Assembly: GCF_902652985.1 (NCBI RefSeq)
Contig: NC_047019.1
Span: 25,730,001 to 25,794,000, forward strand
From: Pecten maximus
Taxonomy: Eukaryota
DNA: 64,000 nucleotides
Reading direction: 5' to 3'
In this document: in pieces, positions 5,209 to 56,300 of the stretch
Layout of the letters: each line of letters begins with the position of its first letter
Position numbering within the stretch: position 1 is the first letter of the stretch
Program-made: the position numbers and the translations under genes
Notes under the pieces: model-generated
Database searches by the model: none
Told to the model about the DNA's origin: nothing
Seen by the model: the letters and a program-made list of their open reading frames with translations, nothing else

Positions 5209-5370
5209 NNNNNNNNNNNNNNNNNNNNNNNNNNNNNNNNNNNNNNNNNNNNNNNNNNNNNNNNNNNNNNNNNNNNNNNNNNNNNNNNNNNNNNNNNNNN
5301 NNNNNNNNNNNNNNNNNNNNNNNNNNNNNNNNNNNNNNNNNNNNNNNNNNNNNNNNNNNNNNNNNNNNNN
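5209..5370. other. Assembly gap (162 N) with a (CAT)n run on the left and CA-rich simple sequence on the right
   Basis: Run of N. Confidence 1.
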
Positions 5371-9559: not shown

Positions 9560-10125
9560 AATTGTCTCCTTGGGAGTTTAACCTTTAATGAAAAAGAAGA
9601 ACTGGGATATGAAAGATCATTCAATGAACTAAAATTCAGTAGTACTTTGTGTACAAGTGTATACTAGAGAACAGATCATTCATGTTAGTATGAAGACAAT
9701 ATAATGTAACAAACTGATAATGTATTTCGGTGGCATCATTACATTGAGATATCACAAACAGTTCAGATTATTGTGGCAATAGACTTACGCATTCAATTCT
9801 GACCTTATAAAATATCTGTAAGTAGGTTTTACAAGTTTTGTTTATTCCTACCTACCAAGACCTTATGTCAGTAGTCAGCTTATAGGCCAAAATCGGGGTA
9901 TTTCAAAATAAGACTTTTGAAATGAAAGAAGGCAAGAAAAGGGGAAGCATCCTAGATGTTGAAATATGTACAGAAATTTCATTGTGGTCATTTGGAATGT
10001 AAATAGTGTATCTGTAGAGAAATGGTAATATTATCGGAAATAATAAATCTGATCACTTTAAAAGGATATTACACGATAAAACATGAAGCAATTACACGAT
10101 ATAATTACTTGCAGCAATATCTTAC

Positions 10126-31852: not shown

Positions 31853-34800
31853 TCAGACACCGGTATTCACTTCAGCATATACAACATTCCCCGAGTCTGC
31901 TTTCGGTTTTGGGCTTACGGGAGGTGGGCGTGACTTCACCCGTGACTGTGGGCGTGACGTTTCGTCCTGAGCACTCACTTCCGCGTACACTAAACCGTCC
32001 GCATTTCTATACCGAGACGGACGGTTGTCACCACTTTCATTACCGGTCTTTTCTTTTTTTGATTTGTTAACGACAGCATAAACATCTCCCTTCGGAGTTT
32101 CCTCTAGTTCCAATCTGTCAATTTCAGTGTCTTTTATTGTGGAATATTGATCTGACTTTCGCACCTGTGCGTACATATCGCCCGTTCCCGTGACTATGTG
32201 ACTGTCGTCCGGATCTCGGGGTCCGGCCGATTCATAGAGCGAGTTGTGAGTTATTGTGTCCCCGTCAGAGTTGACGTATTTCTTCATGGTTCCTGTGATA
32301 GCGTACGGTTGGATGTCACCGTCATAACCGTCATTCGTATTGCCGTTAGACGTGTTCCCACGGTCAACTGGCTGATGAATGTCTGGTTTTCTTCTCCTGT
32401 ACAAAAAAGTGATCTGTTAAAATCTTTTGTAAAATATGACACTTTCAAAGAAAAGCAATGTAACAACTTCAAAACTTCAAAACGCACATACAGTTAATTG
32501 TCAATAAAGCTAACAGTATAGTTGGACTGATAAGAAGATGTTCAAAATGCTTTTTAAAGCTCTAGTTAGACCACCACCTTGAGTATGCTGCAAGTGTTTA
32601 AAACCCATCAAAAGTAAAAGATATAGAACTCCTTGAAAATATGCAGAGAAGGGCAACAAAACTGATCCCTGGATTTAAAAATATCTCGTACCCGGAACAG
32701 CTACAACGGTTAAACCTCCCAACGCTACAACACCATAGGACCAGAGGAGATATGATTAACGTTTTTAAGATATTAAATAACATGTACGATAGTAGAATAA
32801 CAAAAATTTTTTTTTCCAAATGGACAATATGAGTAGAACCAGAGGTCACGATAAGAACATATCCAAAAGCGATGTCGTCTTGATGGAAGGACACATTTTT
32901 TTCAGTTACCGAGTTATTGATTTATGAAATAGCTTGCAACAAATTGTTGTCAATGCTGATTCTGTCATAAAATTTGAAATAATGTTAGATGGTCATTGGA
33001 AAATAACCGTTTTTATTCATGAATGTACAGGAACTAATATAAAACCATTAATTACACAGGAAATATTTTTATCATATGACTACCGTTATATACGGTGTCA
33101 TAAACCCATCACATAAATTTTCTTTATGACACTAGGTAATAACACCTTTCGCTACGCTGATTGGCTGGTTCCGTGAGAACTGTATTCATACGCGTGGGAA
33201 CGACCTACTTCTTTTTACTACGACTCGTAAAAATGGCGACTAGTGCTTGTAAACTTTGAAAAAAAATCAACTGAACGACAAATTGGTCTATTAACATAAC
33301 ATATTGTACAATCAAAGATAAAATCCAAGATGTAAACATCCTAAGTTTTTTAATTATATTTATACTATAAGATGTTAAATTAGGCCTGGCAAACATCTAT
33401 TTTATGACCCCTAGTAACATATTTCAACTCCGATAGAAAATTGCGGTTGCGTTGTCCGATGAGACATATCTAGTCTAGATTCTTTTCAAATAAACAAATA
33501 ATAACATTATTTAATAAAATCTTCATGAAAAACGGCAATGTAGTTTGTTACAACTTGCCTTCAACGGTTACTCAGAATAACATGCTGACACTGTCGTCGA
33601 CAAACACGTGTAATGTCAAAACAAACAACACTGCCAACAAATCGGCATCCAAAGTCGCTTTTCACGGCAGTCTGAACACAATGTTCAGTGGGAATATTCA
33701 CGGTGGAACATTTCACATCTCCAAAAACTCCCGCGAGGACGAGGATAAACACAAAGCAGTGAAAAGGCGCCGTACAATGGTTCTGTACGACAGCGACAGC
33801 GAATAGACATTTGTACAAGCCTCCATTATCGCGCCAAGTGACGTCACGGCTTCGTCACATCAAAAACAGTCGCTCATGAACTTTCAAACTAAAATATTTT
33901 CCTCATTGTTTCAAACACCAAGGACAATTTATCTATTATAGATTAAATGAAAAAATGCTGAAATTTTGTTTTGAGACGTTTATTTAATAAAATGAATCCT
34001 TTTCAAGAGTCAGTTGTGTTAGAACTATTTCTTCTCTCGTCGGTATAATTGACCTACTTCGAAGGTTCGGGTGATTTGGTTGAGATGTGACGATTCAAGG
34101 CAAAAGAAAAAATCAGTTTTTGATGGGGAACGATGAAAGAAAACTTCATATGATAAAAAGAAGCTGTCATTCGTTTCCCTTCATATTAGATTTATGATAC
34201 TCGTTTAGAATTTTTTATTTTTGCTCGCCAGAGGCTCGCAAAAATAAAAAATTCAAAACTCGTATCATAAATCTAATATGAAGGGAAACTCATGACAGAT
34301 CCTCTATATATTACACTATGTATTGATATGGATATGGATATGGATATAGAGGCTACAAGCCTGCGTCCATTATTTATGCTAATAAATGCTAATAAAAAAC
34401 ATGATATCACGAACTCAAAACATAGGAAAATATATTTAAACAAAATATAATACGTTGTTTTATATGCTAGCTATTAGAACATGAAATTTGGTTTGTACAC
34501 AAAACAACAAAATACATTCCATTTTGTAATTTACTTTCTGTTCATGTTTCTGCTGTATGGTAATATGCCTACCAGGCACCTGTCATTTTTGTTTACAAAT
34601 AACGGGCCTAGAGATAGGCATACAAAAAAAAATGGGTGAATTAACCAAGTAGACAGACGGATTTTTCCATTCATTTATTGCTTTAAACCTTACGGTTTAT
34701 CAGTACAAATATTTTCAGTAAATACATGACAAATATTTACATAAGATACACACAAATGGTACCTTACAAACACACAATGACCACACACACAGAGACTACA

Positions 34801-37800
34801 CATACACGACCGCTGCGCTAGTTTAGATAATGTTTCTATGACTTATATTAGACAGTATTCAGTCGTCTTTTTAAACCAATACTAATGAATTTTCCTAAAT
34901 TTGATATTGTCATTGCCTATTTCCAAAAGTTTTAATAAAACATTTTCTTATATCTAAATAATAGATACATTTGACGATAAAATGATATGCATCTTCAACA
35001 TCACCACTGTCACAATATGTACACATTCGATTATGTCTTTCAATGCTCCAATATCTCCCCGTTTCTATATTCAACTTATGCGATGATAATCTATTTTTTT
35101 TTATTTTCGTGATGAGAGACATATTAGTATTAGTACATATATAGTATTGACATTTGAATCATGAATTGCAAATCGTCCTGTGAGTTTTTGAGTGTCCTGA
35201 GTCTGATGCAAGATAGGTTAACTCAATTGTTTTGATAAGAAATGGGGCGTGGCTTAAACGTAGGTACATATTATTATTAGTATATATATAGTATTGACAT
35301 TTGAATCATGAATTGCAAATCGTCCTGTGAGTTTTTGAGAGTCCTGAGTCTGATGCAAGATAGGTTAACTCAATTGTTTTGATAAGAAATGGGGCGTGGC
35401 TTAAACGTAGGTACATATTATTATTAGTACATATATAGTATTGACATTTGAATCATGAATTGCAAATCGTCCTGTGAGTTTTTGAGAGTCCCGAGTCTGA
35501 TGCAAGATAGGTTAACTCAATTGTTTTGATAAGAAATGGGGCGTGGCTTAAACGTAGGTACATTACATAAACGCAGTTCAGTAGCTGATGGTTGATCTAT
35601 GCATGGCCGCCGGTTAAAATATCATTTCAGCATAAAATACTTATCAAAAACATCCAGAGTAAAATAATGAATGGACTTTGTTAACGACGGTTCCGTGTGT
35701 CACCATCAAGGGAATAGGTGAAAGTGAAATAAGGAGACAGCGTTTGACTAGTATTTGGACAGGTAGTCCGTGCTGCACACACGCACTTTGTATCTCTGGT
35801 GTGGGTTACCTGGCTCAACCATTGATACACGTGTTGGTAAAGTATTCGTCTCATGGAGCTTACGGTTTCTCAACAGTCTAGAAGAGCCTTGTTACAACAG
35901 GAAGGAACACGGAATTTGATGCTGAATTAGACTCTTCACAGGAGTTAGTTCACTCTGAAGCTATCTGCTCAGAAGGAATTGACTTTCTGGTTTGTAATCC
36001 TTGTGGTTATCAACCATATGGGGAGCATGCAGGAATGGAGTGAAAATGGAGCAACATGTTCCTATGATGATGTCGATCCCTTCCTTGTCACTAGCGGATC
36101 CGGGGGGGGGGGGGGGGGGGGGGGGCTATCCTGGGGGGTCCAGGAAATTTAAGTTATAGCCTTAATAAAAGGCCTATGCCAATATTGTTGTAACTCTCCT
36201 GTATGTCTCTGGTTCAGCAGAGACCTATACTATACATGTACCTATATGGCAGAGATCATCATCTAGTTCTATAATTGTAGGAAAGAAAACAATTTAAATA
36301 TTAGTTTAGTTGAAATCATAAACCTTACAGTATATGCCAGGATGCATCGCTTGTCTTGAGAAACGAATCTGATTATACCTGTAACATTATGCATATGTGT
36401 GTGATGAAATTCAATACTGATCAAAGGATCAACAGCATATTCATTAGCGGTGACTGACCAATCAGAGCACGTCTTGACTTGTTGTTTTAAGTGGGAGTGG
36501 CTTCGTCGTCAGGACACCCGTGAGGGGTTTAAGTTCTCTGTGCCCGCATCAATCAAACCCTGCGCAATTCAATTCGAAAAGAAATCTTCTTGTTTCCGGC
36601 GTCATGCAATTAATTGTACAGCAATGTGTTCTAATCAGTAGATTTATAATTTAAAGTTGGCCAGACATTGACTGCAATGCTACCTATCTGATTTCCCTAA
36701 AGGTTAGTGAATTATACTAAATGTAGGTTTAATAATATTTACACTTTAATGCCGAATGCTGTTTAACCTGTTCCCATGTCTATTCGACCTGTACCCTACA
36801 TCTGTTTGACCTGTTCCCTACATCTATTTAACGTTTAACCTGTACACTACATCAGTTTAACCAATGCCTTACATCTATGTAACCTGTACCTTACATCTGT
36901 TTAACCTGACACTCCATCTGTTTAACATCTGTTTAACCTGTACCTTACATCTGTTTAACCTGACACTCCATCTGTTTAACATCTGTTTAACCTGTACCTT
37001 ACATCTGTTTAACCTGACACTCCATCTGTTTAACATCTGTTTAACCTGACACTCCATCTGTTTAACATCTGTTTAACCTGTACCTTACATCTGTTTAACC
37101 TGACACTCCATCTGTTTAACATCTGTTTAACCTGTACCCTGCATCTTTTAAACCTGTATCCTACATTTGTTTAACATGTACCTTACATCTGTTTAACCCG
37201 TACTCTACATCTTTTTAACCTGTACACTGCATCTGTTCAACCTGTACCCTACACTGTACATCTTTTTAACGTTTAACCTCTACCCTATATCTGTTTAACC
37301 TGTACCTTACATCTGTTTAACCTGTACCCTACATCTGTTTAACCTGTACCCTATATCTGTTTAACCGGTACCTTACATCTGTTTAACCTGTACCGTACAT
37401 CTGTTTAACCTGAACCCTACATCTGCTAAACGTTTACCTTGTACCCTACGCCTGTTTAACCTGTACTCTTTATCTATTTAACGTTTAACCCGTACTCTAC
37501 ATCTGTTTAACCCGTACCGTACGTCTGCTTAACGTGTAACATATATCTGTTGGACCTGTTCCCTACATCTCTTTAACGTTAACATGTACCTTACATCTGT
37601 TTAACCTGTACCCTACGTCTGTTTAACCTGTACCCTGCATCTGTTCAACCTGTTCCCTACATCTGTTTAACGTGCAACCTGTATTCTTTATCTGTTTAAC
37701 GTTTAATTTGTACTGTACGTCTGTTTTACCATTACCATAGAAGTCATAAGAATTTAAATCGCGATACTATGTCTAATATGATATATATGTTGCGACATTG

Positions 37801-40800
37801 ATGCAAAAGAGAAATAACAAATAAATTGTAAATAGTATAACACAATGAGTTTTCATTTCTTATTCGAATTCATAGAGCGTGTCTTGGAGGTTTCATACAA
37901 TCTCATATGAAATGAAAACGGATTTCGGATACTTTCTATCTTATCACTCAGAAAACGTATTTTTGACAGCTTTTAAAAGTCAATGTGGAGATGACATGCC
38001 ATTGGCTACATTCCGACGTCACAATCGATTTCTGACGCAAAGATGTTGATGTACGAATTACCAACCTGCTGATGACGACACCAACGATGATAGCTATGAC
38101 GACCAGTAGGCCTCCACCGCCGGCTGTTCCGGCGATAATCCCAACTAAAAACAAAAACCAACAAACTGTGCCCATTGTTGCCAAATTATGGTATATTCTT
38201 TTATTATTATCATATTTCACTTTTTGAATGAATAACGTCAATAAGCAAGTAATGGCTCATATTGGTGACTCGGACAGTTTTACTGGGATTGGTGAGCTCA
38301 CTATAAAGTAACACAAAACAACTCCAAAATAATCACTAGGATTTTCTAGGTAGCTGTAACATAGTATATTTTCATTCTCTATATACATATTTACATATGT
38401 TGATATACCTTACTTTTCATGTTCGCACTCTCGATTAGAATTTTTGAATTTAGTTTGTGTTATATATATATATCGATCTCGAGGTTTGCGAGTTTGGGAG
38501 CTTAAAACAACGTTATATCTCCCTAATCAATTTTCGGGGTCACATTTACGATGAATTCTAGTTACGAAATTCCACTCCTCTCTAAATGACTTGTACGAAG
38601 TCAAACGTCCCAAGTACGCATGGTGCTATATAGTCACCATACTAAGTAAAGTATATTTATAACTATAGAATCAGTCAACCATAAATCTACTGCAGAAATT
38701 AAAATCTTAAGTATTTGGAACTATTAATAAAACTCTATGCATGATCATATTGTATGATTCGAGTAGACTTCATCAAGAGGCAAGTATAAGACTGTAAAAG
38801 TATAAGGTAGTTAAAGAAATTCAGGGTAGAAATACAATTTGGTTAGCAATGATTTCGACCGATGGTACCGTAGGACACAGTACAACTTGTAATCAATACT
38901 TACTGTCTGCGTCTAAATTTTTAGCGTTTTTTCCTGTTTCTCCCATCGTTGAAGACACTGCAACAACATCACCAGTAGTCAAATCTGTTGATAAGGTTGT
39001 CATCAGTTTGGTAGACGTAAATGGTGGTTTTTCTGTTGTCGTCATCTTTGTTGTTGTTGTTGTTGTTGGTGGTGGTGGTGTTGGTGGTGATGTTGGTGGT
39101 GTGGAAGTACTTTTTGTTGACGCACTGGTGGAAACTGTCGAGGGTTTGTCAGACGTAACACTATTTTTATTACAGTTAACCGTGATTTCCAGAGAACTGC
39201 TGATGTCTTTGGAAGAGAAAATTACAAAAAGATAGCAAGCTAGTATAACCAATACATTTGTAATTTTGCGACTTAAAGAATTGCATTTAATAACCGAATT
39301 ATCTAAATATGAAATTAAAACAAGAGGCAAAGGGCCACGTAGTTCTCTGGGCTTGGTATTAGTATTTAATTTATTGTTGTCAATTTTCTTGCATTTGATA
39401 ATTATATTTTGTTTAACCAACTGATCATGATTGTCCTTTCAGTTCTTTGTATATCATCTCATTTTCGTCCTGTACAGAATCGGAATTAATTAGTTTTAAG
39501 GCCATATTGTTTTATCTGAAAACAAACCAAACAAGCTCAGCTCCAGTATACTGGCTGGTATGTGTCTGTCAACGCTGGGGCAGAGTAAGGGGAGAGTTTA
39601 GGTCACTAGCTCTATTGTGATTAATACTGAGCGTAATCTGGCATTTAATAGGTTTTTAGGTGGCATGAGAGAGGGAGACAATGATGTTTTGGTCAGCTGG
39701 TGTTTTCTATGTACATTTTATGGAGTCTCTGATTTGGTGAACATAGTACAAGTTTTGATGTTCTGATTAGGAGTTGTTGATGTACGCACTCTGGTGAATG
39801 TGAATATGTACTAAATGTCTGTAAATAAACTGTAAATAGTTTATTAACATTTGTTTGTGGTTTGAACCCCGTCACAATATTTTGAACAAACCTTGATATT
39901 TCATATATTGCCATTTATCAACCATGAACATCTGGTTTCGACAGATTATACTTTACATTCTTGCATGATATCTGTTGATTTGCACATTTAACTGATATTT
40001 CCCATGACAATACTAGGAACTAAATAATGATTAAAAGTATATATATCTCCTGTTATATTTCACTCACAACTTGTAGTAAACACATATTACAACACAAATA
40101 TTGTATACAAATTATACTATGTTATGCCCCAAAACATTTTTATTTTTCATGTATCTTTCAAGTTATGCTTTCTTTCTAAGTTTGATGCATTTATTCTGAT
40201 GCAGATTATATGGAGTATTCGTAGTATGGAACTAGACAATGTAATGTGTGATACTGATTATATGTGAACCACATACAATAAATTTGCTATTTAAAACTTT
40301 ATGTCACATACATTATATAATTGCTATATATAACTTTAGGTATTTTATTTTCATTAATTCTTCAATTAAATCTTATCATTTGATGATATAAAGCAATGCA
40401 TTTGTATGTAACAAGACAGGGGTATTTGTCCACACTACACTGTAGACCACAGACACACGTGTGTGTTTCCCCTTCAGTGTAAACTATACCTTAGGGAGCA
40501 GTGGTTGAAGCCCTGCCTGGACAAAATTAATTGATACTGTCAATAGTCCAGATAACACCAACATACACAAATTGCACTGAATCTCGGCCTAACGATGCCG
40601 CCTAGTGGGATGTATAGCTCGTATTACACCGTTGTTACTAAAAAATAGACATTAAAACTTAATTTTTCTTAAAATTAAAATTTCTTAAATTAAAAAAATT
40701 CCAGTTGATATCGAATATTGTGATTGTTATCAACACAGCAACTTCACAATACCTATAATCTGGTATCACAACATACAGCCATGAATGCACAGTTAGGCTA

Positions 40801-42876
40801 AAAATATGTTTAAAAGGTGCAAAGCAGCAATTTTTTCGACCGCTGACTATAGTTCTCGGGGCTATAAATAGCCCCAGAGAACCAAAAACACTTCAGTTGC
40901 TTACCTGGCGAAATTAAAATACAATGTCCTGACTTCCATTGTGTACCATTTTCTGCCCTGGTCAACGTCAGCGTCAACATGTCTGCTGTCCCGAAATTGT
41001 CCACCGACGTAGCAGGGATCGGGCTACAACCGGTCTCGGTAAAACCAGCAGATGTAGTGGAGGTGATACGAAGTTTACTTGCACAGTTAAGATCTGTTTC
41101 TACTCCCGGATATTCCTGTACTGTCACTGTTGTTGTACGTGATATTTTCGTATTCAGTGTAACGGTACATGTACAACTGTATATCCCCGGGCCTCCCGTA
41201 CCCCAGGTGTCTATTACCATACGTGTGTTATATAGTATCGCCTCCTTGACACATAGTCATAACTACAATTGCAAACAAGAAATAAATATAATACATTTAA
41301 TTCAATACCATTCCCGACAAATAGTAATTACACTCTACTGTGAATTTGATCCTGCCTTAAAATTCCTGTAATTTCTTAAACATAGGCAGCAAATTATATT
41401 AAATTATTCGTTCTCAATTGTTCTGTTCTAAAACATGTTGAAACTCTTATCATTATTTGTGATATTTTTCCTTGTCTGATTGTTTTTAATTCCAGATAGG
41501 TTTGTTAACGGAAACCTAATCTCCTGGTTCCAGATTCATCAATTCACGGTAAAAAAAATAGTTATGAACCTTAATGCGTTCCTATGGAAAATGTTAAGCT
41601 AAGAATGTTATTACGTTAAAGAACGTTAATGAAACTGGAGCCAGATAATAATAGCATACCGTGATTAAAATTTTCTAGCTTAGTCTGATCCGTACATGGC
41701 GTTGTAATGATCCCTGTAATAGATACTTTACATCAACATTGATATAGAATAATAATTTTGATCTACATTGAATGTAAAGTAGCATGAAATGAAATAGAAA
41801 GTTGGTGTAATTGTTATCCATACACATGGACTGCATTTATATAGGAACGCAGTCAGTACATTAAAATAGAGCACCATTTAACATGCAAAACAAAGCTAAA
41901 CAAATAAATGTAAAAATTGTTAATAAAACTCGAGCGGAAAGTATAAACAAAAACATGGTTAACATGTTGGTGGTTTTTTTATGAGGATAATAAAACGAGA
42001 TATTCCGGAAGGGTAATCGTAACCCTCGCAGCTCACATCCTCAAAGCTAATCTAGGATAATAGATTATTTTCAGGTGAAATCATGACGACCATTGACCTC
42101 TTGCTCACTCTCTTTAAAATCATATTTCTAAGCGTCTTTCTTAGCAGTCGACATCTTTTACGAGGAATAGTGATAGTTAGGACTGGTTTTAGAATTTTAT
42201 AACATAAATACATAATAGCGCATAAAACGATATCCTCGTACGTATACGAAAGGGAAAATTGAAATAGATTTCAGTGTGATGAAAGAGGTGCATGTTAAAC
42301 TACATTACCAATACCAATATTGGTGTCAAATCACACCGAGTGAGTCATTGGTAATTTTCATCAGAAATTACACATTCACATATCATAACTGTATTAAAAA
42401 ATCCAATGACATGATTATTTTTTTTATTTATTTTCATTGTTTATATTGTTTGACAGATAATACCACACACGTAACGTGGAACCTAAAATAAAACATGTTG
42501 AGCCTTGTAAATAAACAAATACAACTAATCGCTGAACACCCAGACAATACTTTCATGTGTTATAATCGTACAGATCACGCTGCAATAGTATGTTATTAAC
42601 ATAGATTTTATTCGGCGTGAATATTAGAATACTAGTATATACCTCCTCATTATTTACAGCTTCAAACATGTAACATGGCATCATGTACTATATTTAATAG
42701 TAATAATAGTTATCAACATCTTAACTTTGTCACACAATAATTTGATCAGTAGTGTCAGTGAAATCGCCTTTGATATTTACTTCCGCATCAGAGTTACCTG
42801 TAACACACACGCTGAGAAGTAACCACACAGACGTAATTACTGTCAGTACGCTGAGCTTGTCCTCCCTGCCTCTCAT
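31853..42876 (-). CDS. Receptor B: ITIM-bearing type-I membrane protein, about 471 aa if one +1 frameshift in exon 3 is corrected (possible pseudogene). Exons 42876-42798, 41713-41660, 41262-40905, 39206-38904, 38144-38066, 32396-31853
   Basis: Signal MRGREDKLSVLTVITSVWLLLSVCVT; 8-Cys domain; Thr/Pro stalk; TM GIIAGTAGGGGLLVVIAIIVGVVIS; tail with DMYAQV, DVYAVV, LVYAEV and VVYAEV. Exon sizes 79/54/358/303/79/544 compare with 79/55/357/222/79/514 in paralog C. Confidence 0.82.
32525..33050 (+). mobile_element. CR1/L2-type LINE 3' fragment; its tail resumes at about 34310-34400 after a nested insertion
   Basis: LVRP.LEYAASV, then ENMQRRATKLIPGFKNISYPEQLQRLNLPTLQHHRTRGDMINVFKIL, characteristic of the CR1 ORF2 C-terminus. 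A tandem ATGCTAATAA tail lies near 34376-34396. Confidence 0.85.
33058..34309 (+). mobile_element. Internally deleted Crypton-like element nested in the CR1
   Basis: Flanked by a 7-bp direct repeat ATTACAC (33051-33057, 34310-34316). Subterminal inverted repeat TTTTTATCATATGA / TCATATGATAAAAA. Long 3' hairpin at 34164-34298. Relic ORF 33525-33806 (MFSGNIHGGTFHI..KRRR..DSDSE) resembles C-termini of Crypton tyrosine-recombinase proteins; family assignment is from recall. Confidence 0.6.
34850..35120 (-). mobile_element. 3' fragment of a non-LTR retrotransposon (RTE-X-like C-terminal Cys/His motif)
   Basis: RLSSHKLNIETGRY..NRMCTYCDSGDVEDAYHFIVKC. Confidence 0.75.
35121..35563. repeat. Three near-identical tandem copies of a 147-bp unit
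   Basis: TTGACATTTG recurs at 35147, 35294 and 35441. Confidence 0.95.
36760..37730. repeat. 22-bp minisatellite (ACATCTGTTTAACCTGTACCCT)n with a homogeneous 54-bp higher-order core at about 36880-37140
   Basis: Visible directly; the core gives the 18-aa periodic ORFs at 36864 and 36875. Confidence 0.95.
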
Positions 42877-44463: not shown

Positions 44464-44464
44464 T

Positions 44465-44555
<91 letters not shown>
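44464..44555. repeat. (CT)n microsatellite
   Basis: Pure dinucleotide run of about 90 bp. Confidence 0.99.
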
Positions 44556-44558
<3 letters not shown>

Positions 44559-44799
44559 GAGTAAATATAACACTTCGATTTACATCATTATCTTTACATA
44601 TAAATAACAAGTTTTAGTACATTTTTTAGAACAAGGCACTCTGAACCTCAGTAATATCAGCATTGCACTTTGCTGTTGATTTTTATTTTTCATCATTGTA
44701 AATCGTTCGATAAATTATCATACATTAACATATAATAACATCATTACTTTTATAATATTTAGTTATACCAGTAATTTTATCTAATAGTTCTTAAAATAT

Positions 44800-46200
44800 T
44801 CTGAACATAAACTGTTGGTACTATTTTTCTTTTCTGTGTTTTCCTGAACATGGTTAGATTATTCCTTTTTTTTTTTTTAATTTTTTCATGAATGATATGA
44901 ATTGTAGATGTCTTTTTATTGTATAAATGAGAGTTGTGCTGTATTGAGAAGCACAGAGAGATTTCCTCGACATCCGAGAATCAGGTTTTCAATTACCAAC
45001 ATTTCTTCTCTCAATCCTGGAATATGGTCTAGTATTTGTGAAGAACACATGTTCAGAATATCTTTATATTCATAAAAAAGGTGAACAACATCTTCGATTT
45101 GGTTCTTGCAAAAATGGCACATACCATTTGAATTACCAAATCTAGTTATTTTTGATTCGGTTTATATAATATTATGTACACACTTCCATTGTAATTCTTT
45201 CATTTGCGTTGTGGTGATAGTATTTGTTATATTTTGCCATATTAATTCCCAATGAAATTGTTTTTGAAATTCGAATTCCCATTTTATTTTGCACGAAGAA
45301 ATACCATCTGTCTTCATTTTATTTGCTATCATTTTCGGTTTAAGGTTAGCGCAAGATATCTGTTTTGCATCTTTTCCTATTATATTAAGATTGGCGTTTA
45401 TAATTAGGTACACACATTCTCTTACCCTGACATCATTTCCTTTCAGAATATTAAGCTATTCGTTCGGAAACGCATGTTTAAATTCGCCAGTTCAGAGATG
45501 CAGTTTCTTTTATCTATCAAGATATTGTATATTTCACGATCTTCGTTTCTCTTTTCATCCCATCATTCTTTAACTGCAAAAGTGTTGCTTTTTAGAAAGG
45601 AAGATAAAAATATAGGCATTCTGTTATACTGGATAAAATGATTTCCAAAGATGGGCTGATCTAGTATTCCATTTCTGCTAATATTGGAGAGGTTGGACTT
45701 TTGAAAATGTGCCAAGCTTCAATAAGTTTAATCTAGTGTTCGAATGTCTGATAGCTTGATTAAGAAATAATCTCTGTATTTTTCATCCATATAGCAAATC
45801 CAGTGTTTACCAATCACATTATATGTGTCGTTTTCACTTTTTATTATCTTGTACATTTATTTTATTTGTATGCTGAAAATAAAGCCTTTTATATCAACAA
45901 TCTCCATACGCCCTTCTTCGAATGTTTTTGACATTATTCTGCGGTTGACTAAATCTCTCTTTTCATTCCATACGAACTTCCATATTAATAATTTGATTTC
46001 ATTGCTATACCTTTCAGGAATACCACGAGCCTCTACTTCGAATTCTATAAGAGATATAATCAATGATTTAATTATCAAGCTCTTACCGTATAATGATGAG
46101 TTTCTGCTTTTCCATATCTGCACACATGCCTTAATCTTTTTATTTTTTCTTCCAATTACCTGTTCTGGATCATCAATATTTCTTCTGACGTCGTTTGTTC
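44800..46200 (-). mobile_element. Degenerate L1/Tx1-like LINE 3' part
   Basis: KIKACVQIWKSRNSSLYGKSLIIKSLIIS, LIWKFVW, ELQWKCVHNII and CHFCKNQIEDVVHLFYE. Confidence 0.8.
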
Positions 46201-47479
46201 CCAAACTAAGTGTGACGTTTTTAATGTCGGCGGTTTTTTTGGGATCAACGATAAAGCTCTCTTTATGACAGCGTCTACTTTTTCAAGTGACGCAACCGAA
46301 ATAGAACCGTCGACTACGTTCTTTTCTAGGATAGATATCCGTTAAACATTGGACGCTCCCAGTATCAGTGATATGTCACTCTATTTAACTTGTTTCAGGG
46401 AAGTTTCGTCAATGTTTGTTTGAGTGTCATTTGTCGCCTTACGATTACTTTCATACTCCGTCATTTCTCTGCCATCCATCACATCATTATTTTACTCGCC
46501 ATATAGGTTCATTGGACAATTTTGTTGTAAATGTCCATTCTTTTTACAGATAAAACAACAGTTTTCTTCTTTTAGGGACAGTCATGTGCTAAATGGGCCT
46601 CGCTTATGCAGAGGTAACACTCTTTGATTCGCACGGTTTTATTTGGGCATTTATAAGACGAATGTTTTTAAGTTTTTAATTGTCTAAGTTTCCTTTTAAT
46701 CATAGTTATGATGTAATATGAATATGGCAGGCCAAAATAAAAAAAAATCGGCATAGGGATAAAATTGCATAGTGTTGACAGACATACAAAATTAAGATCA
46801 GGGCACAAAGGAAAAACTAAACAAATGCAAATACCATGGCTTATAATAGTAAGAATTAGGTAAATTTGGATAACCCAAGTAGTACGCTTTTAATAGTGAT
46901 ACACTAATAATTATTAGGAATTGTTTGGGTATTTGAGGCATTGAAAGGTCTGTTCAAGTTATTGTTTGCGTTCGCAACCAAGACTGACGTGATGCATGAT
47001 AGGATACTCCCAAACGCAGACGATATAGTTTAAGAAGGAAACATATATCCAGCCACTCCATACTAAATAATTACATATTTACCAAACAATATTGACAAGC
47101 TGATTATAATTTACGATCTTAGGACATAAAATGGGCAACAGCTACGATTTCTTATATTTAAAAATAATTATTCATATCGTCCAAAATATCGCCGGTAATG
47201 CTATACAATGTAGTTGACTTACAAAGTCAATTCTAATAACAATAGATATACCAATATTTGTATTTATCGTGTTTGTCAAGTTATTTAAATTCCAGGATAC
47301 AGGACAGGATCGAACCTGAGTTTATGTAACTCCTTCTTTTTTCTGTATATCTGCCATAAAAGTTTTTTCAACACAACCTGGGTTGAAAATACGGTAGCAA
47401 GAGGGGCAACATCTTTATACTTTGTTAGAATACATCAGGTCCATTGAAGAAATGCTAAAATTGTATATACATGTGCATG

Positions 47480-49310
47480 TATAAAGTATTTAATTCTAAT
47501 TTGCTGAAAGTTTTCCCATGTTTGAATAAAAACTTGCAATTTGTTTTGTTTTTGTGCGATTGCTTTATGTATTTAGTACATTTTTGTTATGTATGCTTTC
47601 AATTCGTTGATATGTATGTCTGATTTTTTCCTGGATGTGAGACATATGTAGTGTTATGAGTATAGTATTATACAATTCCTTAGAATCATTATTTGGTTTT
47701 TGATCTTTTGTTGAAAAACCGAATAGAATGACCTTGATATTAACCTTCGATTTATTTGCAGTTTTTCAAACACCCAAAGTTCAATGTTCTCCAGATCGTT
47801 CTAACTTTCTTTCAGTTCCAAAATATGTGTTCCATAGTTTCTTTCTGATAGTTACAAAGATCGCAAGAGCCATTTTTAGGTTTGTTTATTAATTTTTAAT
47901 GGTTATTATTGGGAGTATTCTTTTCTGTTGCCTGAAATGAAACCAGTGTAAAGTATTTTGTGTTGTGGGGAATGGTATCATTTAACGCTGTTTCCAAACT
48001 TCTGGTGTGTATTGTGTTGTTCTTCCCATTTAACTTCTACTGTGTTCCTTGAGATATTTATCTTATTTATTGTTTTATATATATATAGATTCCCTTTCTG
48101 TTTCTAAGTAGTATGTGGTCAGGTATATATGGTCTATTAAATGGTTCTGTTAATTGCATTGTTATGTTCTTTATTCTACATTGATGTTGTATTTCCTGAC
48201 AAAGCCCCCTAAACAATATGAAAATATTTGACTGTATTCTGAATATTCCTCAAATTTGAGAAAAAAAATGTACCATTTTAGACATAAGATCCCAAACATT
48301 TTTACCACCTTTCGCATACCATTCCATGCAGGAAATTGATATTATTTTCTAACTGAAATGAACAATTGTGCCTTACAGGAGATTTCATTATATCGTTTTG
48401 TGGTTCATTTTTGCTCGTTACATTATTCCAAGCTATCAGCCAAGTTTTTGTTCTAATATCTTTAATCTATGGGGGTATATTTCTGCACTAAACTTAGACC
48501 TAATCTAGATAACTGAGGTTTTTTCCTTATTAACTTCAAGCCCCAAAATCTGAGCCTATCGTTCTATTGTATCTAATGTTTCTTTAAATTTTTCGGAGCA
48601 ATTTTGAGATAAAGGTGGTGTCATCAGGAAATTTCGAGAGTTTATGGCTTATTTGATGAACTTCTATCCCTTTAATATTATTACTATTTACTAAAATTTC
48701 TGCAATAATGATGAAGACATAAGGATATATTGGATCTCTTTGTCTGCAGCCTCTATTCAGTGAAAAGAAATTTGATAGCGAGCGATTTCGCAATATAGCT
48801 GATGATGCATGTTTTGTAAGAGTTTTAATCCACTGTTTTATGTTTTATGTTTTAGGTCCAAAATTTGAAAAAAAAAATCAATTGCTTTTTCCATGAACTG
48901 CCGTGACACTGATTCGAATGCTTTTTCGAAATCAATCAAAATGATTAATTCTTGGATGTTATTTTCTTTTTTAAATTTTATATGAGCCTGGTATTCCCTC
49001 CTAAATATCTACCGCATAGAAATCCTGTTTGCGTATCAGATATAATTGTGTTCGGAACGTTTTTCTTTTAAATGTTTTCGATTCGAGCTGAGGCCAGTTT
49101 TTAAGTTACATTAAGAAGTGTGATTGGTCTCCAATTTTTCAAATATTCACGTGCTATATTTTATTTTGGTAAGCATGAAATAATCCCTTGTTTTTTGTGT
49201 TATTAAGAGCAGTTTTTTTTTTTTTACTTTATACTGTATTCAGTAAACGTTTAATACAAATCTTTATATCTTTCCGGAGAAAAATGATAGAATCTGCTGG
49301 TATGATATCT
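47480..49310 (-). mobile_element. Degenerate L1/Tx1-like LINE with reverse-transcriptase remnants
   Basis: NWRPITLLNV, IDFEKAFESV, RGCRQRDPIYPYVFIIIAEIL and KFPDDTT (decayed YADD) in broken minus frames. Confidence 0.85.
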
Positions 49311-51164
49311 GAATCGTGTGGTTTGTTATTTTTCATATCCATTGTCAATTACATGTAATACCGATAAGTATAAGGAGTAAAATATATATACTTAAAAGTT
49401 ATAGCGATGACGTTATTCCCCTAGACATAAGACATTTACGTCGGATTCAGAGGTCAGTCTCCTTTCTGCTGGTCCGGACGGGGGATAAATCGATTTATAA
49501 ACACTACAAGGGTTGCTCATGAAATATGTATAAGGAGGGGCAATTAAGAAAGTTGAGCGATTTCATCAAAAGTTGTTTTATATCTATATTCCATCATCAT
49601 CAGATTTCCAAGTTGTACAGCATAAGATGGTACGTTCGGTTGTTGTATCTATAACGTAGGTACATACATGTAAAGCGATACAATGTATAGGGCCAGTGTT
49701 CACTTATCTATATTTACATGTGCGTGTCTTGATATTTATCAGCTATTTGCACATTGAAATTCGATTCCAAATTCGCAATGTGTTGAAATCAAAATTTGGT
49801 TTCTTTTCAATTCGTTTTGAACAGACTATATTTATCGACAAAAAAACTAGCTGGTTAACAATTCAATTTATACGGCATTGTACACCAACTGGTGTACAGG
49901 TAAATTATCGTCTTTCTAAGCTGTTGTTATGTTTTCATGTCTACATGTTTACATTAATTGTGTATGATAATACATACAGTGATCGGTTTCCGTTTTAGTC
50001 AACTTTCAGACCTGTACAGATAATCACCAGAACACGTGTCGTGTTACTTGTGTCCTTCGAATGATTGATTAACTTAATTGGTATGTGTGAAATTTTCCCA
50101 AAATGAACTGGATAGGGGCGATTATCGGCGACCAGTTAGCTCAATGGTAGCGCTTCCGGTAAGTGCTCGGAGGTCCACTTATGCATTTTCCCATTCCTCT
50201 TACATATTTATGTGTATTAGTTTAGTTTATTCATATCTACACATTTTCATGGATATGATTTGGTACTGGTCCCTCAGTCAAAGAATCGCAACATTGCTTC
50301 ACTACATGTCATGAAGTTTTTTACCGCAATTTCGATAGAGCCCACCAAGGATACAATATTATAGGCGTTTATCGTCCTCGGACCAGTGTTGACAACGAAA
50401 ATCAATGAGACAAAAGCAGTTAAAAACACACAGAAAGAGAGCACATACAAGAAGACAGGACAGGGCAGTACAGAAAGAATGATATTAAGATCCAAAGTGT
50501 TACAATCCGGGCAGCAGGCCAGTTCGGGTCTTTTCAAAACAAAGCAGAGGAGGGCGCATTCAGGAAAGAAAGAAACGACAGTAAAACAATTATGGTATAA
50601 AGTATGGAAAGCCGTATGGGACCCCGGACTTTCCACAACCCAACTGTAAAGCTGAGAGTAGATCAATTTCGGTATTTTCAGTGTTACGGAAGTAAAAGCC
50701 TGCAGGGTCTCGCTTTCAGTCAATTCATTAAAAGGATACGAAGGTATTGGCCGTCTTATCCGCCTATTTCGAGACACGTGTACAATAACAAATGATCTGA
50801 AAGTAAACAGAAACGGAACTTTAAAAAGTGTCCGGTGACCGGGAAATTAAAACTAGCTTTAGAATGTAATAATGGTTTAATTAAAAACAGTGAACCACTC
50901 TGTCGTCTGTGAAAATTTCGTTCATGTTAGTCTAGTTCACTAGTCCAGGTTGGTGTCGCCTCTCCCCGATAGAAGATTTATGGGACGAGTTGGACAAACG
51001 AATATGACGTAGGCCGAACCCTCTAATCAATGTCGTCGAGAAATCGTAACATGCATTTAAGTGTTCAACACAGATGCTGAATGTGTGCAAGATTTGTTTC
51101 TACCACAATACGCCGTGTTATTCCACTCTCAAGCCATTGTATAAATGTGTCGACTGTTGGATAA

Positions 51165-51562
51165 ATATATGTTATATACCACTAGTGGTATATCACCTTC
51201 CGGTCTTTTGATTGGTCAAGAATTTGAACTTTTACTCAAGCTGCAATTGTTATTGACGTCATCAATAATTGAATGATGTCACATCACCGGGTTCCGGACG
51301 TCACAGGTACACTTTATTTGCATACGCGAAATTATACTTGGCCACGTTTCCCTTTGATTCAAGCCGATATTATTGTGGTAGAAACAGGTCACACGATTCG
51401 TGATTGTTGGATATGGAATTTATTTCACACTCGTAAGTTATTTTTTAAAAGTTGCAAAAGACACTCGCTAAAGCTCGTGTCTTTTATAACATTTAAAAAA
51501 TAACTTACTCGTGTGGAATACATTCCATATTCAACAATCACCACGTTGTGTAACCTCTATTT
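51165..51562 (+). mobile_element. Short non-autonomous element of the same hairpin class as 33058-34309 (Crypton-like)
   Basis: 5' palindrome TATACCACTAGTGGTATA, a GATTGG box, and a long 3' imperfect hairpin (about 51390-51552) with CTCG bulges ending in CCTCTAT. Confidence 0.55.
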
Positions 51563-53381
51563 ATCTCTCAGAACGGACTTATACTGGGCATCAAACTATT
51601 CACCAAAATCACCATACCTTATACCTTTACATATTCAGCCGATGTAGCCGCTTTGTCCTGGTACCGCTTTGTTTCATTGATCGAAGCTTTTGGTATTTTT
51701 TTTCCATTTCTCCACAATTATTAATTTCCTAAAGAAACGTATAACTTATAATATTTCCAGAGTACATATGTATTTATTTCTTTTGTAACAGATCAATACA
51801 AGCGTTGATTTACATTTTATGTTGAGGAATGTCAAATTTTTCGTTCAATTTTATCTTCCTATTTTACAAAAACAAATTACACAAAAAACAAAACCAAAAT
51901 CATGACTAATTTATTGAAACGGTAAAACATAGCATTATTATATATTAAGTCAAATAATAAAGCTATATAGTTTGGCAAGATGAAATAAGTAATAATGCTA
52001 TATGCAGATACTTGTTTATATCCGAACAAAATATAGACCGTTGTTTTTTTATTTTTTTTTTTTTAAGATAGGCATATATTCTATATAACTCCTGCAGTAT
52101 ACGTGTTTGGTAATTAACGACAAAAAAGTAAAACAATTACACTGATCAGGCAAAGGCACTCAGGGTTTGTCAACTTCAGTAGGTGTGCAAATGTTATATT
52201 TGATATAAGAAAAGTGCTAACCATTGAGAATGTCAGCTTATTTTATCTACAATATTTGCCTGTTGTAATATATTTCACAATACATTATTTATCCACGCTC
52301 GACTTTTTATAATTACATAATCACAACATGGAATCAAATAGAACAGAAACAAGACAGCATTTCTGATGTCAAAGACTACAAAGGGGAAATAAGCAGGATT
52401 TCATGACAGAATGTCACTGCAGCTGTAACACACAATCAGACCTACACTTAGAATGACATATCATACACATTGTATATTTTAAGATAATGGATAATATATT
52501 TAATTATTTACGAAAGAAGCTTTCGCTTTCGTTTTTAACGAAAGCAACATAACTTTGATAGCATTTACTGCTAATACTTAGTGCACAGTCTATTTAATGG
52601 TAAGTGGAGTAGGTGGATTAGACGTGAATTGGAAGTAAGAAAACAATTGATGTTAAACATAATGAAATACTTATCGTGTTTATAATTAAAGATATAATTA
52701 CATAAAAATTAATATAGCTATCAATACAAGATTAACAATTCAACACAACTGTAGCACCACCATATTTAAGCTACTAAGACAGTATTTGATATGTTTCAAA
52801 TGTCATTTAACACGTCTGTAGCTAAATATGAATTAACATTTACAAAACCATATTAACAAACCTGAAAAAGGCTTCTGATGATCATCGCAATATAAGATTA
52901 TAATAACCGACAAACAAACGTATACACATATACACAACAGGTTTGCGGGTTGTTCTTGCATAACATCCTAGCAACAAATCAAGTGACATTTAAGGAAGGT
53001 ATCCAATTGATTGGGACCGCTTTATAGCGACAATATCATGATGGAGGTACATTGACATGACATATCCCAAGTTATACTGACAACAGAATAAGTTAGACAT
53101 GTTCCTTTGTACAGCCCCTTTAAAGCTAATCGTCGACCACTTTTAATGACTTTTGTATGTCATAGCTCTAGCCTGTTTCACAGGAGAAAACACTTAAATC
53201 AGGAATTAGCTGAATTTTGGCGCCTATAACGAATCATAAAAACAAAAACTACAATTATTAAGAAAATTCAGAAAAACAATATCAAATAAATTACGTCATT
53301 TGTTTTAGACTATATTTATGTTATTTCGGACCGGGATTCCTAAATAACAGAACACTACTCTGTAGTACAATATTAGTGGAG

Positions 53382-56300
53382 TTATACTCCTCCGTCAGTG
53401 TTAACTTCCGAATATATTACTCTGTCAGCGTCAGGTTTTGGTTTAGGCCTGACTGGAGGACGAGACTTGGGACGAGATGTATCATCTATCTCCGCGTACA
53501 CTAAACCTTCCTGGTTTTTATATCGAGAGGGCCGTCTATCCTCATCCGTTTGTGATTCATCGTTCCTGTCGTCTGACTGTTTCCCTGGCTTATTTACAAC
53601 GGCATATACGTCGCCAGAGGGAGCTGTCACTGCATGTCCTCGTGTTGAACTGTTTGAATGTTCTGTCTCAGAATTTTCATTTGTTGCTGGCTTCTGGACC
53701 TGCGCATACATATCGCCAGTCTCTGTGACAATATGGTTATTATCCGGAACGCGTGGTCCCGCCGATATGTAGAGAGAATTTTGAGTTAGTGTGTCTGAAC
53801 CTTCGTCATGATAAAATTTTGGTGTTGCGACAGCATAGGGTTGGATGTCCACAGAGAAATTTTCCTCGGGGTTCTTCGCATCTGAACGTTTTTTCCTATT
53901 AAGAATAAAGTATTAAGTACATGTATAAACAATTTCAAATCACCGATCCACGTTTAAATATTTACGTATCGTCAACGTCTTTGTCGTATTTTGAACTGTT
54001 GTGTTATCGTGTTCGTTTAAGTTCGTACGTGTTAGATTTCTAAACAGTTTATTATGAAGCACACTATACAATTGTATAATTATGGTAATAAGCTATGCAA
54101 TTATTTCATTTCATAATCATATCTGTAGATTACACTATATATATAGCACTGGGTTGTTCTGATTTTGATATCAATACATCTGTAACGTTACATCTGAAAT
54201 TATCTGCCTTATTATCCAGTAAGTAGACCAATGACTATACTATTAATACTACAATGCCGCTAAGGGCGATGCCTTTACATGTAATTATCTAATCATTGCT
54301 ACAATAACGATAATAAAGACGATGGATATTTACTTACTACTACAATGATAAGGACAATGACTACAATTATCTTATTGTTATTACATTGAAGATGATAACA
54401 ACAATAACTATACGTACATTTTTATTATTATAATGACGATGATAAAGACGATGACTTCACTTACCTCAGTACTATAACAATGACGATGATAAGGACTTGA
54501 CTGCATTTACCTTATTATTATTTCAATGAAAAAGATAAGGACGACGAATAGCATTAGAGCAATGACTACTTACCTAATTATTACTACAATGACGATGATA
54601 AGGACGATGAGTAAAACTGCACCACCGCCGGCTGCTCCAGCAATAATCTCCACTAAAACAGATACTAGTACAATACAAACACTGGCACCTCAACATACGG
54701 TACAGCATGCTCAACATATTGAAACAAACACGAGTGTTATTTACAAATACATTGTAGGCCTAGTTATCGCGTTCATGTATTTACTGAATCACAAAGGTTT
54801 CACTATTTGCGTGCACTAAGTAAGTTTGGACATTTTCTTAGCTGTCATGTTTACGTATATCGTAGCTTTAAATATAATTTAAGTAGGAACAGGACTATCA
54901 TGTGTGTTATGTGGAAATGTTTCTAAGATCCGTGTACCTATAAAAACAGATATCACTTACCTCCTATTGACGACTCCTTTAATTCTCCGTTGTTAACATC
55001 ACCATTACCTTTACCCAATGTACGATTGGTAATGGTCTGTATGGAACTGGAGCCGGTAGTGATCGACGTCGTCGTCGGTGTCGTCGTTGTTGCTGTTGTC
55101 GCCGTCTTTGTCGTCGTCACAGAAGTCGACGGAGAGCTGTCTGATCCGCGCGGTGCATCACAAGTTACATTTAAAGTAACATCTATCAAAGAATGGTTAC
55201 CGTGTTACGTGAAGTGTTAACGCAAGTGCGGGAAACAATGAAAATCTTATTAAGAATCAGTGTATAGTTCAGGTCGTATAATAGTATTTGTCACACTACA
55301 CTGAAGCTCAAGAGAAAATTGAATGTTTAGATGATTAGTTACCAAGTACGTAGATTACATAACCTCGAAACGATTGTCATTAAGCCTTGATCTGACAAAA
55401 TAAATGCGTTCTTGTTCACAATAAATATAATCTGACATGAGTAGCTCGGCTGGGTCATGTATGTGCGGCTAGTTCTTTTTGTTTTGATTTTGTTTTTTAT
55501 CAGCAAAAGCCGTATTGATAGATTAAAAGATGCATTATTTGATGTGAAACTTTTTATGCATATCTAGTTCTGTGTGGAACTGTGTGTCTTACCAAGAGGT
55601 ATTGCCTTACTATGTATACCCAAGTTTGAACAAATACGGTTAATAAATGATATGAAATTGAAACAGAATTACAACAGAAACTTGCATTACATATGGAATA
55701 TCGAAATATGGAGTATTTTAACATATCAAATAACTCAATATATACATTTATATTGCATGTGTATTTACTGGTAAAACTCGTTAAAACCTAATCTTACTGA
55801 TTGATGTTAGCTCTATATTATGTTATCCGAGGCGACGTGCGAAGGTCAACATATCACCAAAAGACGTCATACTACTATTATTAATTATTACTTACCTGAT
55901 TTAATGAAGATACAGTACCCGGATTGCCACGGGATGTTGTCATCTGATCTGGTTAACGCAATATTGTAAACCTCGTTGATTGTAAAGTTTGTGATGATGT
56001 CCCCACTAATTTGCTGACATTGATATTCTGTAAATGTATTTACAGGAAGCCTGGTAAATCTTAGTTTACTTTTACAATCAGACGCCGGCACTGTATCAGG
56101 ATAAGCATTGATGTCGAAGCGGACGGGAATCGTATGAGCCACAGTCAGTCTAACTGTACACTGACAACTGATGTGTCCTAACCCTCCTGTGTCGTACGTA
56201 TCAACCACCACACGGCCAGCAGTTAAAGTCCCACTCCTACACATCGGTACCACTGTAAGGTCAAATACATCTCATTAAAATGTACCAATATTGATAATAT

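Follow-up and report, generated by a model that had tools for sequence, protein, structure and literature searches.

Two paralogous scallop membrane proteins share a conserved order of candidate phosphotyrosine docking motifs in their cytoplasmic tails

In vertebrates the adaptor PAG/Cbp, a membrane protein with almost no ectodomain and a juxtamembrane palmitoylation (Cys) motif, brings Csk to Src-family kinases through sites of the form pY-(A/S)-x-V. LAIR-1 and similar receptors are type I proteins with short tails that carry paired ITIMs (immunoreceptor tyrosine-based inhibitory motifs); LAIR-1 associates with Shp1, Shp2 and Csk (PMC11421324). A bivalve precedent is the oyster receptor CgNCAM1, which has two ITIMs, recruits the phosphatase SHIP2 and dampens inflammation (PMC11841013). 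We analysed a 64,000-nucleotide stretch of the scallop Pecten maximus (NC_047019.1, positions 25,730,001 to 25,794,000; hereafter the window, to whose numbering plain coordinates refer), in which 21 kb separate two minus-strand genes, B and C. Their products are paralogous membrane proteins of type I, with a signal peptide, a CUB-like head, a mucin-like stalk, a transmembrane helix and a cytoplasmic tail of about 170-180 residues. From the motifs and their conservation we consider it likely that this cysteine-free, probably disordered tail is a phosphotyrosine docking scaffold, whereas its more specific reading, as an inhibitory tail that would recruit both SHP2 and Csk, is tentative and on balance doubtful. 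As far as seen, B and C appear to be old paralogues within a scallop-specific family of type I membrane glycoproteins.

A preliminary description of the window had listed the same motifs, in the same order, in both tails. A six-frame motif scan located every string on the minus strand, and the tyrosine codons and proline-rich stretches lie on the same strand.

B 32317-32300 and C 53849-53832, minus strand: DIQPYA
B 32245-32234 and C 53780-53769, minus strand: NSLY
B 32182-32162 and C 53717-53697, minus strand: GDMYAQV
B 32089-32063 and C 53615-53589, minus strand: GDVYAVVNK
B 32023-32009 and C 53534-53520, minus strand: RPSRY
B 31996-31979 and C 53507-53490, minus strand: GLVYAE
B 31933-31922 and C 53465-53454, minus strand: SRPP
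B 31912-31901 and C 53447-53436, minus strand: PKPK
B 31885-31862, minus strand: VVYAEVNT; C 53420-53397, minus strand: VIYSEVNT
B 31933-31901 and C 53465-53436, minus strand: proline-rich stretch
B 32305-32303, 32278-32276, 32236-32234 and 32173-32171, minus strand: tyrosine codons 1-4 (PYA, KKYVN, NSLY, YAQV)
B 32080-32078, 32011-32009, 31987-31985 and 31879-31877, minus strand: tyrosine codons 5-8 (YAVVNK; RPSRYRN; GLVYAEV, ITIM; VVYAEV, ITIM)
C 53837-53835, 53813-53811, 53771-53769 and 53708-53706, minus strand: tyrosine codons 1-4
C 53606-53604, 53522-53520, 53498-53496 and 53414-53412, minus strand: tyrosine codons 5-8, the last two in ITIMs

Each motif set occupies a single last exon, in one open frame running to the stop codon (B 32317-31862; C 53849-53397). 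The span 31853-53895, to which the preliminary description had assigned the motifs, runs from the B stop codon to the first base of the C tail exon and therefore also takes in other B exons and intergenic DNA. Aligned over 193 columns, the tails share 54% identity (BLASTP, 49% over 168 residues, E 8e-35). One conserved tyrosine was missing from the earlier list, K(K/R)YVN in B-type and KFYH(D/N) in C-type tails; also overlooked was the match of RPSRYxN and KxYVN to the YxN (Grb2-type) pattern.

Motif enrichment was assessed against composition shuffles of each tail (20,000 each). YA.V occurs 4 times in B (shuffle mean 0.04) and twice in C, a count reached by none of the 20,000 B shuffles and by 0.045% of the C shuffles. 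Shuffling gave at least two ITIM matches in 3.8% of trials for B and 1.8% for C, and N.LY in 1.5% and 1.1%. P..P and Y.N were not enriched in the B and C tails, the observed counts being reached in approximately 20-45% of shuffles. YAQV and YAVV fit the Csk-type core pY-(A/S/T)-x-(V/I/M), as a motif match only. ITIM matches ([ILVS]xYxx[ILV]) fit the consensus and lie in the tail of a membrane protein, which we place in the cytoplasm because there is a signal peptide and because basic residues follow the transmembrane helix. There are two per tail in seven of nine aligned tails and one in the other two. Where both are kept, they are 27-44 residues apart (36-44 in B-type and 27-29 in C-type tails). 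Known ITIM pairs are spaced by about 22-26 residues; tandem SH2 domains could bridge the scallop spacing by way of a disordered linker. Assignment to the ITAM class, which takes two Yxx(L/I) motifs spaced by 6-12 residues, was rejected, each tail having one Yxx(L/I) (YSTI in B, YAEI in C) and its other sites ending in V. The hemITAM class was rejected too. Inspection of both tails also found no YxxM, YxxP or ITAM pair.

A profile of the two tails was searched against 1.84 billion representative proteins and returned 10 matches, of which P0008 (a WD40 repeat protein) and P0010 (a repeat protein) were dropped as apparently spurious. Word-based searches with a C-type tail, a B-type head and an Ig-receptor tail supplemented it, and each yielded five proteins, all pectinid; none of these searches demonstrated the motif grammar outside scallops. 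B-type proteins occur in Pecten maximus (P0013), Mizuhopecten yessoensis (P0014) and Ylistrum balloti (P0001), and C-type proteins in P. maximus (P0012), M. yessoensis (P0011), Y. balloti (P0002) and Argopecten irradians (P0003, a partial model); two short proteins, P0004 and P0005, have the same tail grammar. Since each type has its own orthologues in Pecten, Mizuhopecten and Ylistrum, the B/C duplication is older than these three genera. A genome search found the full tail in P. maximus at B and C only. In the M. yessoensis C orthologue P0011, the TPSGDVYAVVNKP unit and its linker are tandemly duplicated, which shows that such cassettes grow by internal duplication.

We aligned nine tails, two of them from the window's own genes (seven pectinid tails plus P0004 and P0005), and called a column a conserved tyrosine where at least four of the seven pectinid tails, P0004 and P0005 aside, had tyrosine. 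There were eight such columns, and the sites keep their order across four scallop genera.

PYA tyrosine: 8 of 9 tails, one gap
K-x-Y tyrosine: 7 of 9, two gaps
NxLY tyrosine: 7 of 9, H in P0002, one gap
YAQV tyrosine: 9 of 9, no exception
YAVV tyrosine: 9 of 9, no exception
RPSRY tyrosine: 7 of 9, C in P0002, F in P0005
First ITIM tyrosine: 8 of 9, D in P0004
Last ITIM tyrosine: 8 of 9, the end of P0003 differing

The preliminary description had made its reading hang in part on whether orthologues keep these tyrosines, and they do, with both YAxV sites invariant and each ITIM kept in all tails but one. Taking as motif windows the three residues before to four after each conserved tyrosine, mean conservation was 0.81 in the motif windows and 0.58 in the linkers (nine tails; Mann-Whitney p 6e-9). 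In the seven pectinid tails, 26 of the 35 invariant columns fell within the 64 motif columns out of 170. Conservation is a stronger argument than the shuffles that the motifs exceed chance. The RNA contigs differ from the assembly in tail C at 15 or more positions (15 among the differences listed, seven further differences lying beyond the listing), and none of the 15 listed variants touches a tyrosine or a +1 or +3 residue.

The layout of B and C resembles that of CDCP1 and DCBLD1/2, where a CUB-type ectodomain and one transmembrane helix precede a tail rich in tyrosines that serves as a platform for SH2 domains; the DCBLD tail motifs differ (YxxP for Crk), and no sequence relationship is known. 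In proposed role the tails resemble PAG/Cbp. Unlike PAG/Cbp, B and C have an ectodomain of head and stalk, and their tails contain no cysteine and match no Pfam family at the curated cut-off, with no PAG/Cbp family among the weak matches; homology to PAG/Cbp was rejected for want of Pfam support and of any tail cysteine. LAIR-1 has an Ig head and two tyrosines only, has no separate YAxV site, is restricted to vertebrates and is unrelated in sequence; its binding partners have been demonstrated, whereas those of the scallop tails are predicted from motifs. CgNCAM1 differs in its Ig/FN3 head, in having only its two ITIMs and in its partner, and no YAxV/NxLY grammar is described for it.

For the YAxV sites, one likeness is Y685 of VE-cadherin, written LYAQV (bioRxiv 10.1101/2024.04.17.589974) and bound by Csk when phosphorylated (PMC11550946). 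The first YAxV site of B and C has exactly this YAQV core, but in VE-cadherin it is one site in a cadherin tail with other flanks before the tyrosine. The preliminary description had compared the sites with CagA, an effector of the bacterium Helicobacter pylori, whose EPIYA-A (STEPIYAKVNK) and EPIYA-B (PEEPIYAQVAK) segments bind Csk through A or B (PMC4412286; PMC3593179). That comparison holds after the tyrosine (YAKVNK and YAQVAK against YAVVNK and YAQV(R/Q)K), and in the repetition of motifs within a disordered region, and fails before it, where the scallop has G-D-(M/V) in place of E-P-I. The sites were accordingly rejected as EPIYA members, since they read G-D-(M/V/L/I)-Y-A. CagA is an injected effector whose segments are promiscuous SH2 ligands, and the likeness is one of short motifs, not of descent. 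In p140Cap, EGLYA and EPLYA are ligands of the Csk SH2 domain and Abl substrates (PMC3561454). The acidic or Gly-Leu context before YA recalls scallop (D/E)GLVYAE, but p140Cap is a cytosolic adaptor and the residues following YA differ.

The motif cores also recur on other scallop receptors. Five pectinid Ig/FN3 proteins (P0006, P0009, P0021, P0022, P0023) carry an N(V/I)LYESAGP...G(D/A)VYA(V/A)VxKP...YAE(V/T) cassette, in up to five copies. The NxLYESAGP core is in all five and the YA(V/A)VxK core in four; the fifth, P0023, retains NxLYES(A/T)G and YAEV. The B/C tail profile matched P0006 at E 6.9e-9 and P0009 at E 4.9e-5. These nephrin-like receptors thus share NxLYESAGP and G(D/A)VYA(V/A)VxKP followed by YAEV-type sites with B and C, and differ in their unrelated heads, in their cassette number and in having no RPSRY, proline-rich or terminal ITIM part. 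Because NxLYESAGP and GDVYAVVxK are repeated in unrelated Ig/FN3 receptors, they appear to form a portable signalling module. A third arrangement is found 2.2 Mb from the window on the same contig, where a paralogous tail exon (L003, G000 C5:28022727-28023077, plus strand) has three H(I/V)xT(P/S)SGD(M/I)YAQVxK repeats, resembles Y. balloti P0007 and lies near clustered exons for CUB-like heads (C5 27.96-28.01 Mb).

Gene C is expressed and spliced. Contigs of four RNA runs, chosen by the tail C exon, were aligned to 53000-58900, and all four runs covered that exon. The joints were 53895/54574 (X1, X3) and 55182/55896, 56252/56655 and 56709/57049 (X1); the X11 contig spans the same last two introns (56252/56655, 56709/57049), a few bases off. 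These contigs are spliced RNA, because the skipped minus-strand stretches start with GT and end with AG. A fifth intron, 54653-54960 (308 nt, GT..AG), was placed from loose contig ends at 54654 and 54961, giving six coding exons.

57049..57127, minus strand: C exon 1, ATG and signal peptide MCRIAIKVKTSSIGLLLLILVCFHYH (26 codons + 1 nt); joint 56709/57049, N-terminus resembling P0002
56655..56709, minus strand: C exon 2, short linker, 55 nt in the assembly; RNA contigs
55896..56252, minus strand: C exon 3, CUB-like head, 357 nt; RNA joints and structure model
54961..55182, minus strand: C exon 4, mucin-like Ser/Thr-rich stalk; joint 55182/55896 plus loose contig ends (54654, 54961)
54574..54652, minus strand: C exon 5, transmembrane, 79 nt, EIIAGAAGGGAVLLIVLIIVIVVII; RNA joint and translation
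53385..53895, minus strand: C exon 6, whole cytoplasmic tail; joint 53895/54574, stop codon 53382-53384

The 3'UTR of gene C extends below 53000. Gene B was modelled by homology and splice-site reading, with its exons translated and searched singly, as for C.

42798..42876, minus strand: B candidate exon 1, putative ATG and signal peptide MRGREDKLSVLTVITSVWLLLSVCVT (26 codons + 1 nt), resembling the P0014 N-terminus
41660..41713, minus strand: B exon 2, 54 nt, GIITTPCTDQTKLENFNH, placed by homology only (tblastn, P0014 and P0018)
40905..41262, minus strand: B CUB-like head exon, 358 nt in the assembly; homology and splice-site reading
38904..39206, minus strand: B Ser/Thr/Pro-rich mucin-like stalk exon; homology and splice-site reading
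38066..38144, minus strand: B transmembrane exon, 79 nt, GIIAGTAGGGGLLVVIAIIVGVVIS; AG/GT boundaries, length and phase equal to the C counterpart
31856..32396, minus strand: B last exon, whole cytoplasmic tail; acceptor AG ending at 32397, stop codon 31853-31855

In B and C alike a single exon with the same entry phase encodes the whole tail, and the B tail exon is 100% identical to residues 233-413 of P0013. The frame of C exon 2 is broken in the assembly; the X1 and X11 contigs are each one base shorter at 56680-56683, and without the extra base the signal-peptide frame joins the head frame, as in the Ylistrum orthologue. Either the assembly is wrong at this point or the extra base marks a frameshift allele. 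The B head exon frame breaks about 11 codons past its acceptor (41150-41262, assembly sequence). The database proteins for these genes, P0012 (C, 432 aa) and P0013 (B, 413 aa), match 96-100% exon by exon; P0012 begins in the upstream intron and P0013 at an internal Met (MVIDTWG), so that neither has a signal peptide, apparently because of the frame breaks in the assembly. Tandem satellites of about 155-bp units lie at 59800-61750 and of about 147-bp units at 35100-35600, the latter block, together with another at 36860-37700, inside the 5.7-kb last intron of gene B.

The B and C head frames (40813-41256 and 55891-56271) are 37% identical (BLASTP, E 7e-22). Pfam CUB (PF00431) was not matched, and three head exons gave no Pfam match at E up to 1; among nine exon translations, heads and tails were empty and the only match lay in a neighbouring Mab-21/cGLR gene. 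AlphaFold modelled the C head exon as an all-beta sandwich (pLDDT 74.7, pTM 0.67; 10-row alignment). The top Foldseek matches were CUB domains of Kremen, PCPE-1, spermadhesin and neuropilin (E 3e-4 to 1e-2, TM 0.54-0.59), and cubilin was among the fold matches. VIA-align gave Kremen1 Z 9.8 and 9.4 and MASP CUB2 Z 8.8, with GOLD and collagen-binding domains at Z 8.4-8.8. ESM Atlas features leaned to CUB clusters (0.81-0.84), as a lead only, and the head alignment has four invariant and one nearly invariant cysteines. On the model, the head may thus be called CUB-like, not a proven CUB member.

CUB-like heads form a multigene family with at least 11 head-exon matches in the P. maximus genome, many of them paired with a short tail exon of the VHYDSL...NLYADT...MYVNT type. 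Further family head exons lie at G000 C5 27.957-28.012 Mb, at C5 18.258-18.274 Mb and on contigs C3774 and C1689. In M. yessoensis, the heads of the short-tail proteins P0018-P0020 are 77-79% identical to that of the long-tail B orthologue, and short and long tails on such similar heads suggest a pattern like that of paired receptors. At least three tail types occur on similar heads: the long eight-tyrosine tail, the short VHYDSL...YVNT tail and the tail with three YAQV repeats. The window holds a third family member, gene A (19107-21221, minus strand), with a weakly similar CUB-like head exon at 20844-21221, a 312-residue Ser/Thr-rich mucin exon at 19439-20374 and a transmembrane exon at 19107-19445; on the plus strand, 62950-63060 weakly matches the P0018 short tail (E 0.015). 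Directly downstream of the receptor array is a cGLR-type gene (7466-9577, minus strand), a long frame with matches to Mab-21 nucleotidyltransferase (E 2e-12) and HhH (E 3e-14) and a TPR-like end. A run of 162 N occupies 5209-5370.

The preliminary description had proposed that a single tail recruits SHP2 and Csk as a double brake on Src-family signalling. We retain this in conditional form. Ligand-driven clustering would lead Src- or Abl-type kinases to phosphorylate the tail; SHP2, through its tandem SH2 domains, would dock at the C-terminal ITIM pair GLVYAEV ... V(V/I)Y(A/S)EV, and a Csk-type SH2 domain at the two GD(M/V)YA(Q/V)V(x)K sites. NxLY suits PTB domains of the Dok or Shc type and YxN the SH2 domain of Grb2, so these sites would add PTB and Grb2-type docking, and the most likely net outcome would be dampened Src-family signalling near the receptor. 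The proposal gains from the ITIM pairs, the Csk-like sites, the LAIR-1 precedent and a suitable partner gene: exons at G000 C16:32687816-32710513 (minus strand) run SH2, SH2, phosphatase, and an SH2 exon there matches PTPN11 (SHP2) at E 7e-36 and PTPN6 at E 2e-24 in the PDB. Because of this order and best match, we conclude that an SHP2-type gene is present in the genome. A proline-rich stretch is likewise in both tails, as the preliminary description had said in naming an SH3 ligand, but it is not a canonical class I or II ligand in every orthologue.

Several observations weigh against the double brake. SHP2 itself often acts positively in signalling. A Csk gene was not found among 30 of 39 SH2 exon matches, a result that does not imply absence because only top candidates receive a score in the search and introns interrupt SH2 domains. 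The 30 comprised 28 candidates and two at the SHP2 locus and were cross-matched with tyrosine-kinase exon matches; the candidates included what we take, from their hallmarks, to be Abl, Src-type, Tec, Fer, Syk, PI3K p85, SOCS, Grb2-like and SH2B proteins. Two loci considered as Csk, L016 and L026, were rejected, their best PDB matches being other proteins. Csk is nevertheless ancient, occurring in choanoflagellates and filastereans (PMC5876402). CagA YAxV segments bind SHP2, SHP1, PI3-kinase, Grb2 and Crk as well (PMC4412286), and YAxV therefore does not single out Csk. The residues before the scallop tyrosine differ from those of EPIYA. The ITIM consensus is loose, with more than 1600 ITIM-bearing human membrane proteins quoted (PMC11460946). 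The YxN sites suggest Grb2, and because YxN and NxLY sites are also present the tails are not purely inhibitory by motif; every YxxV site matches the sorting signal YxxPhi as well. Single sequences lack some of the tyrosines (the Ylistrum C orthologue at NSLY and RPSRY, P0004 at the first ITIM), and among the listed tail C variants nonsynonymous changes were 1 of 4 inside motif windows and 8 of 11 outside, which is not significant (Fisher p 0.14). The 5' exons of both genes have frame breaks in the assembly, which RNA resolves for C only. A text search of the literature gave no mention of YAVVNK, LYESAGP or YAEVNT, and one for oyster ITIM-SHP2 gave unrelated papers only. Phosphorylation and partner binding of both tails are predicted from motifs. 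Taken as a whole, the explanation that joins the scaffold to the SHP2/Csk reading would seem to us evenly poised between right and wrong.

The strongest competitor, still improbable in our estimation, keeps the phosphotyrosine sites and changes their outcome. The tail would be a hub for several adaptors, of the Gab/DOS/FRS2 or CagA type and positive or neutral in effect, with YxN bringing Grb2, the ITIM pair bringing SHP2 as a Ras-MAPK activator and YAxV bringing several SH2 proteins, for net activation or adhesion remodelling. YxN stands at RPSRYxN in seven of nine tails and KxYVN in all three B-type tails, CagA YAxV segments bind SHP2, PI3-kinase, Grb2 and Crk besides Csk (PMC4412286), and a review terms EPxYAxV promiscuous and depleted from mammalian proteomes (PMC3593179). 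However, Y.N does not exceed the shuffles (its observed count was reached in 13% and 45%), neither tail has the YxxM, YxxP or ITAM pair, and the tyrosines best kept besides the ITIM pair are the Csk-like YAxV sites, each in 9 of 9. Less probable again is a sorting role of the tyrosine motifs, in which AP-2 would read YxxPhi and endocytic adaptors of the PTB type would read NxxY, so that a mucin-like scavenger or adhesion receptor is taken up and recycled whether or not it is phosphorylated. Each tail has four or five YxxPhi matches where 1.2-1.5 are expected, NxLY is present, and the pairing of CUB-like head and mucin stalk recalls cargo receptors such as cubilin, a fold match. But GD-x-Y-A-x-V-x-K, HNxLYxSAGP and DGLVYAE are kept across genera with flanks beyond what sorting signals need, eight ordered sites far exceed the requirement, and the cores are repeated up to five times in Ig/FN3 receptor tails, as in signalling scaffolds. 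The shared order could also be nothing but recent duplication or gene conversion of B and C, with functionless motifs, since they are neighbours on one strand and the only two strong copies in the genome; we regard this as highly implausible, because both types have their own orthologues in three genera and so predate them, the tails are only 54% identical with identity focused in the motifs, and the heads are 37% identical.

A lineage-specific docking scaffold, probably inhibitory and with SHP2 and Csk as its candidate partners, is the reading we prefer. A wider proposal, speculative and unlikely to hold in full, is that NxLYESAGP, GDxYAxVxK and the ITIM pair make up a scallop 'brake cassette', carried on two or more unrelated heads, CUB-like/mucin and Ig/FN3, that would dock Csk and SHP2 beside Src-family kinases as an invertebrate counterpart of PAG/Cbp plus PZR- or LAIR-type receptors, the CUB-headed family being a paired-receptor system of bivalve innate immunity.

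The family has a new architecture and is, as far as seen, limited to scallops, but systems of this kind are already known. We know of no invertebrate orthologue of PAG/Cbp, and membrane recruitment of Csk and SHP2 in invertebrates is, to our knowledge, poorly understood; the tails supply short, conserved and testable docking sites for that question. That the sites occur on two unrelated scallop receptor families suggests a shared set of downstream partners. As members of a lineage-specific multigene family with alternative tails, next to a cGLR gene, B and C are reasonable candidates for regulators of immunity or adhesion in a commercially important bivalve. If the partners prove different, the locus would still be a clean case of a motif grammar kept in a disordered tail while the folded head diverges faster.

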